Source of the DNA: Dicyema japonicum | Taxonomy: Eukaryota > Animalia > Dicyemida | DNA: 64,000 nucleotides | Assembly: GCA_011109175.1 (NCBI GenBank) | Contig: RDEW01000049.1 | Coordinates: 246,945-310,944 of the forward strand | Direction of reading: 5' to 3' | Shown here: positions 32,430 through 34,205 of the stretch, in pieces | How the letters are laid out: every line of letters begins with the position of its first letter | Numbering within the stretch: the stretch's first letter is position 1 | Made by a program: the position numbers and the translations under genes | The notes under the pieces: generated by a model | Databases searched by the model: none | What the model was told of the DNA's origin: nothing | The model's input: the letters and a program-made list of their open reading frames with translations, nothing else

Positions 32430-34205
<1,776 letters not shown>

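Follow-up and report, generated by a model that had tools for sequence, protein, structure and literature searches.

A 23-nt GT...TG micro-intron with a putative UG 3' splice site in an ALDH3-family gene of Dicyema japonicum

Results

Structure of the ALDH3-family gene

The window analysed in this work, a 64-kb stretch of the Dicyema japonicum assembly (contig RDEW01000049.1), carries on its minus strand a gene of the ALDH3 family, whose model of 477 amino acids in 12 exons extends from the ATG at 34205 to the stop codon TAA at 32432-32430 and is interrupted by 11 introns of 21-24 nt. Introns 1-5 (34196-34176, 34028-34006, 33912-33890, 33664-33642 and 33555-33532, minus strand) display GT-AG ends, as do introns 7-11 (33217-33194, 33086-33065, 32931-32908, 32836-32813 and 32566-32545, minus strand), all of which are in frame. 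The first intron, of 21 nt, is an addition to the gene model of an earlier reading made from the sequence alone (the sequence-only reading), and the surroundings of 33532-33555, where a frame problem had been suspected, correspond to an ordinary 24-nt GT-AG intron. The remaining intron, the sixth, lies at 33367-33345 and ends in TG.

Assignment of the gene to the class-3 aldehyde dehydrogenases is supported by the Aldedh domain, by the ELGGK[SN]P and GQxC motifs, and by class-3 enzymes being its best matches. The model displays 38-43% identity to full-length class-3 ALDHs and 31-35% to three more distant sequences, and the top solved relatives are 4qgk (ALDH3A2), and 1ad3 and 3sza (ALDH3A1). 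Downstream of the TG junction, the NCGQxC, EEIFGP and FGGVG motifs are all intact. The coding sequence includes an 89-nt tandem duplicate (33666..33754) which breaks the frame and differs by one mismatch from 33755-33843; once it is removed, the model is free of stop codons. Our gene-structure script also proposed, antisense to this gene, a 138-aa open reading frame with two "introns" (32972-33429, plus strand), which we took as a false positive of a weak coding model.

The standard genetic code fits throughout, and the gene content is that of an animal. A ciliate reading, with TAA and TAG as Gln, was rejected, the sole in-frame TAG being inside the 21-nt GT-AG intron 34196-34176 and the coding sequence ending in TAA. 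The GC content of the window is mostly 36-44% in 2-kb steps, to be compared with 36.7% published for the whole genome (PMC6736024), and an Rfam scan of the window returned zero families.

The GT...TG intron and its exon junction

The upstream exon (33368..33531, minus strand) ends with the AG of a Ser codon, and the downstream exon (33218..33344, minus strand) supplies the T of that codon, continues with PVYVDEDC... and holds the catalytic Cys motif. Between them, the segment 33367-33345 was read again on the minus strand and found to be as the sequence-only reading had claimed: 23 nt starting with GT, ending with TG and with no AG inside, flanked by ...GAG TTG GGG GGA AAG AG upstream and T CCC GTC TAC GTT GAT downstream. 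The GT...TG observation is thus confirmed. Two bases of the Ser codon stand upstream and one downstream, which makes this a phase-2 intron, and its excision regains the ELGGKSP motif.

That this restoration is exact, another claim of the sequence-only reading, was borne out by three comparisons. Searched each on its own against the Pfam Aldedh profile (PF00171), the upstream exon covers positions 187-239 and the downstream one 241-280, so that position 240 alone remains for the split Ser; on human ALDH3A2 (4qgk_A) the same exons correspond to residues 163-212 and 214-253, with residue 213 as the split Ser; and an alignment of 15 sequences displays zero gap at the junction. The sole alternative register yielding an identical mRNA would have GG..AT ends, retention of the segment in the mRNA leads to a stop 30 codons on, and the next AG, at +42 and 19 nt downstream, shifts the frame to a premature stop. 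Since the alternative register, retention and the +42 AG all fail, production of the conserved protein depends on the removal of precisely this 23-nt segment.

The intron shares with the other micro-introns of the genome the GT start and the length of 21-24 nt, and departs from them in its end, which is not AG. Its only mid-intron A, 33353 (minus strand, intron position 15, -9 from the 3' end), is a candidate branch point judging from its position, and lies one base further out than the modal -8/-7 of other introns. An 11-mer, TTGATTTGTAT, common to this intron and to the last intron of the gene was considered as a sign of duplication and attributed to chance, as matches of at least 11 letters occurred in 47 of 200 shuffles.

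The acceptor in read-derived contigs

Contigs from four public runs (X1, X3, X4 and X5) were compared with window positions 32530-38519. Runs X1, X3 and X4 were made from a single sample, and their contigs, derived from Illumina reads, retain introns and cover intergenic sequence, so they represent DNA; they differ from the window at approximately 1% of sites. An X1 contig covering 32530-33526 displays 10 differences and an X3 contig covering 32862-33381 displays 6, none of them at 33345/33346, and the single change within the intron is at 33354 (intron position 14, G to T). Across the X1, X3 and X4 contigs, with depths of 19-288, no alternative letter was detected at 33345/33346 at a 5% threshold, bearing in mind that Logan contigs drop rare variants, such that a minor AG allele could go unseen. 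As a 3.1-kb X4 contig is unbroken at a depth of 288, this sample contains essentially one version of the locus, which differs from the assembled one. The acceptor in the contigs is TG, not TAG, and TG is thus carried by two DNA versions; its retention in contigs that differ from the window by approximately 1% effectively excludes sequencing error, which the sequence-only reading had already found hard to invoke.

The published assembly was produced with Platanus, SSPACE and GapCloser from pooled animals, with a reported heterozygosity of 1.24% (PMC6736024), and displays imperfections, namely single-N gaps across the window and the 89-nt duplicate, 300 nt from the TG intron. The X3 and X4 contigs hold one copy of this 89-nt sequence, joining 33665 directly to 33755. 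Because it is absent from the read-derived contigs, the duplicate at 33666-33754 is either an assembly artefact or specific to the assembled haplotype, and it probably arose during gap closing or haplotype merging.

Selective constraint on the gene

Comparison of the assembly with the contigs over the ALDH3 gene revealed 8 synonymous differences in 325 sites, 5 non-synonymous in 1106 and 6 intronic in 253, corresponding to a dS of approximately 0.025, a dN of approximately 0.0045 and a dN/dS of approximately 0.18; the chance under neutrality of at least 8 synonymous among 13 changes is 0.003 (binomial). The gene is under purifying selection. In the part downstream of the TG junction alone, 4 synonymous and 3 non-synonymous differences were counted, and there the signal of selection is not significant. 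Since intron divergence about equals dS, the introns of this gene appear to drift freely save at their ends. As regards pseudogenization, the sole disruption found was the 89-nt duplicate, which is not in the reads, and the dN/dS of approximately 0.18 (p=0.003) is that of a constrained gene. With the frame, the motifs, the downstream introns and the dN/dS all intact, it is unlikely that the acceptor lost its function before the two versions split.

A second GT...TG intron in the proteasome gene PSMC3

A gene for the proteasome ATPase PSMC3/Rpt5 (37231..38706, minus strand) contains 9 micro-introns of 21-23 nt, of which 8 are GT-AG and one, found de novo by the gene-structure script, is GT-TG (38421-38399, minus strand, 23 nt, phase 0). 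Its junction is likewise exact: on human chain 5vgz_F, the upstream exon extends up to residue 43, and residue 45 pairs with the second residue of the downstream exon. By our own reading of the sequence, the next AG stands 13 nt beyond the TG, outside the conserved frame. A candidate branch A of this intron is located at -7. In both TG introns the end corresponds to an A-to-T change at position -2, and positions 20-27 contain a single G, at position 23.

Run X5 leaves out exactly the 21-nt intron 37466-37446 of this gene, which it crosses in spliced form only, and covers the PSMC3 exons at depths in the hundreds and ALDH3 at depth zero; on these grounds we regard it as RNA-like. Its contigs stop exactly at the 3' ends of PSMC3 introns at 37342 and 37720, as expected if the library mixes spliced and unspliced molecules. 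Two further features of the surroundings were recorded. Just downstream of PSMC3, at 36928-37046, the haplotype of X1, X3 and X4 has 117 nt replaced by 26 other letters. Between ALDH3 and PSMC3, a highly repeated element without an Rfam match (35530-36930) reaches contig depths up to approximately 300 times single-copy (93,000 in X4, against 288), with many partial joints and loose ends in the contigs.

Homologues and transcripts were searched for both genes. The representative protein library contained relatives at no more than 59% identity, a homologue search with a genomic open reading frame gave nothing above 76% identity and no near-identical protein, the same search with a PSMC3 exon gave zero candidates, and exact scans of metagenome contigs for the spliced ALDH3 and PSMC3 junctions gave 0 matches.

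Census of short introns in the window

Our curated census of this one 64-kb window comprises 63 short introns, of which 61 end in AG and 2 in TG, in agreement with the sequence-only reading, which had counted two TG introns, both of 23 nt, among approximately 55-60. Lengths are narrowly distributed (22 nt in 23 introns, 23 nt in 21 and 24 nt in 14), such that 58 of the 63 measure 22-24 nt, and both TG introns fall in this most typical range. All 62 introns of 21-24 nt start with GT, a count built into the procedure, since the model permitted only GT donors. An A is enriched at -8 (33/62) and -7 (34/62) over a background of 27%, which matches the weak A signal described previously (PMC13644364). 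In length, composition and GT start, the ALDH3 TG intron resembles the other 61 introns. An AG lying 2-4 nt upstream of the AG in use is skipped in 4 of 60 AG introns (CAGAG, CAGCTAG, GCAGAG and GTAGAG; GT-AG introns within 33890-34028, 30519-30542 and 60691-60712), consistent with an acceptor that has to lie at least a certain distance away from the branch or the 5' end.

The gene-structure model used a 3-periodic Markov coding score, accepted only GT donors and introns of 18-45 nt, and penalized ends other than AG. With the 89-nt duplicate removed, it predicted 68 introns in 19 genes and needed a non-AG intron at two loci only, ALDH3 and PSMC3, the same two that the sequence-only reading had reported. 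For ALDH3 it misplaced the 23-nt removal, at 33307-33285, and consequently the boundary of the TG intron rests on homology. Elsewhere in the window, two identical 30-nt GT...AG segments (46036-46065 and 46186-46215) lie 150 nt apart in a tandemly repeated coding unit predicted on the plus strand.

Discussion

A putative UG 3' splice site, probably chosen largely by distance

Few signals in eukaryotic genes vary as little as the AG at which introns end. In the light of the results described above, we consider it probable, at roughly 0.7, that 33367-33345 is a genuine spliceosomal micro-intron with a UG 3' splice site in a functional ALDH3-family gene. The mRNA would then join at AAGAG/TCCCGTC, and the UG site would probably be constitutive and chosen largely by distance. 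The PSMC3 gene lends support to TG splicing, because a TG intron whose junction is just as exact occurs in the gene of a conserved proteasome subunit.

A distance ruler of this sort may operate as follows. In introns so short, the 5' GU, the 3' end and a branch A approximately 7-9 nt before it would be squeezed near the smallest workable space of the spliceosome, leaving a docking range of only 2-3 nt for the 3' end. The main determinant of 3' cleavage would then be distance, namely 22-24 nt counted from the 5' end and approximately 7-8 nt past the branch A. Where an AG falls within that narrow range, it would be used; where none does, the single G in range would be used, even after U. The last G of an intron pairs with its first G in the second catalytic step, and under this proposal that terminal G would be kept and a U tolerated at -2.

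The sequence-only reading had gone further, seeing in the two introns a systematic feature of splicing in this lineage. The two exact 23-nt cases, the A-to-T change at -2 in both, the lack of any other non-AG intron in the window and the purifying selection on ALDH3 fit that view. In its broadest form, it would hold that approximately 2-3% of dicyemid micro-introns genome-wide, essential genes included, regularly and constitutively use UG as their 3' splice site, that cleavage takes place a set number of bases away from the branch or the 5' end and requires no more than the terminal G, and that this class has been invisible to all published annotation; we regard this broader proposal as evenly poised between true and false.

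Alternative explanations

The main rival to a functional UG site is a weak or null allele, in which the acceptor mutation damages ALDH3, splicing being poor, lacking or diverted to the +42 AG, and the gene being a dispensable one that is decaying into a pseudogene. A 3' splice site does not usually survive an AG-to-TG change, and ALDH3 is not essential in general; moreover, the RNA-like run X5 has zero depth on this gene, and the part beyond the junction, taken by itself, gives a weak signal of selection. Against this stand the age of the change, which is not recent since TG is shared by two DNA versions approximately 2.4% different at synonymous sites, the intact 477-codon frame with all its catalytic motifs and ten other introns at a dN/dS of approximately 0.18, and the same change in PSMC3, a gene expected to be indispensable, so we judge a damaged gene unlikely. 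Somewhat further down in probability, and in our view quite improbable, comes a polymorphism in which a coexisting canonical AG allele would supply the functional mRNA: the pooled animals and their heterozygosity of 1.24% (PMC6736024) leave room for such an allele, as do the rare variants dropped by Logan contigs, but TG is found both in the assembly and in the X1, X3 and X4 contigs (depths 19-288), with no other letter at the 5% threshold.

An artefact of sequencing or assembly at the acceptor base is scarcely credible. The frame-breaking duplicate 300 nt away and the single-N gaps show that the assembly is imperfect here; yet the independent Illumina-based contigs reproduce the TG, the 10 differences of X1 all lie elsewhere, and one type of error would have to have occurred twice, each time at the same place in an intron. 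We also find it very improbable that the segment is removed or bypassed without the major spliceosome, be it as a U12-type intron, by DNA elimination or by translational bypass. U12-type introns are known to tolerate varied 3' ends, but the 5' end here is GTTGTCC against the consensus RTATCCTT, and no TTCCTTAAC-like branch box occurs in GTTGTCCGG...; the segment is not bounded by TA, and the DNA contigs contain it. These mechanisms are further disfavoured by the standard code and animal genes, and by a length, composition and GT start like those of the other 61 introns.

Implications for splicing and annotation

Should a lineage routinely use UG as a 3' splice site, it would constitute a natural experiment on whether the second step of splicing chooses its site by distance or by sequence, and would also raise the question of whether early recognition of AG by U2AF35 is dispensable. 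Pipelines of the TopHat/AUGUSTUS type favour canonical intron ends. The published gene models of D. japonicum were built from TopHat junctions and AUGUSTUS (PMC6736024). A TG class, if real, would be invisible to published annotation because the aligners and gene finders allowed canonical ends only. If so, TG introns would systematically break or truncate gene models in the micro-intron genomes of dicyemids, and perhaps of myxobolids, including that of the essential PSMC3, and intron statistics based on annotation would be biased towards AG.

Comparison with known systems

The tiny introns of ciliates (Paramecium, Stentor) and of the Bigelowiella nucleomorph resemble those described here in their narrow lengths near the physical minimum and in the detection of retained introns through frame and stop codons; they differ in belonging to unrelated lineages and in having GT-AG ends, whereas the genome studied here has the standard code and animal genes. 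U12-type introns also have a variable 3' dinucleotide, but their 5' consensus and branch box are missing here, and a length of 23 nt is, to our knowledge, far below that of known U12 introns.

The micro-introns already described in dicyemids and myxobolids (PMC13644364, PMC6736024, PMC6543705, PMC2222250, PMC2483917), like those in the window, measure 21-24 nt, have a 5' signal reduced to GT(A) and a weak A enrichment a small number of bases before the 3' end, and lie inside conserved coding sequence; their splice signals have been described as weak in dicyemids (PMC13644364, PMC2483917). Unlike the TG introns reported here, this literature gives AG as the 3' signal (PMC13644364, PMC6736024, PMC6543705, PMC2222250, PMC2483917), and no report of TG-ended introns in either group was found in the searchable literature.

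In humans, GT-TG introns are removed by the major spliceosome, with GNAS and TSPYL2 among the known cases (PMC4176328 and work cited there), and these mammalian U2-type introns likewise combine GT and TG ends with the terminal G kept (PMC4176328). They are, however, very rare, mostly alternative acceptors beside a normal AG, and found in long introns with a pyrimidine tract (PMC4176328). Here, in contrast, TG would be the sole usable acceptor of a 23-nt intron, and the TG class amounts to approximately 3% of the short introns in the window (2/63). A tandem TG/AG acceptor of the mammalian type does not fit the ALDH3 intron, which holds no AG and is followed, 19 nt downstream, by the out-of-frame AG at +42.
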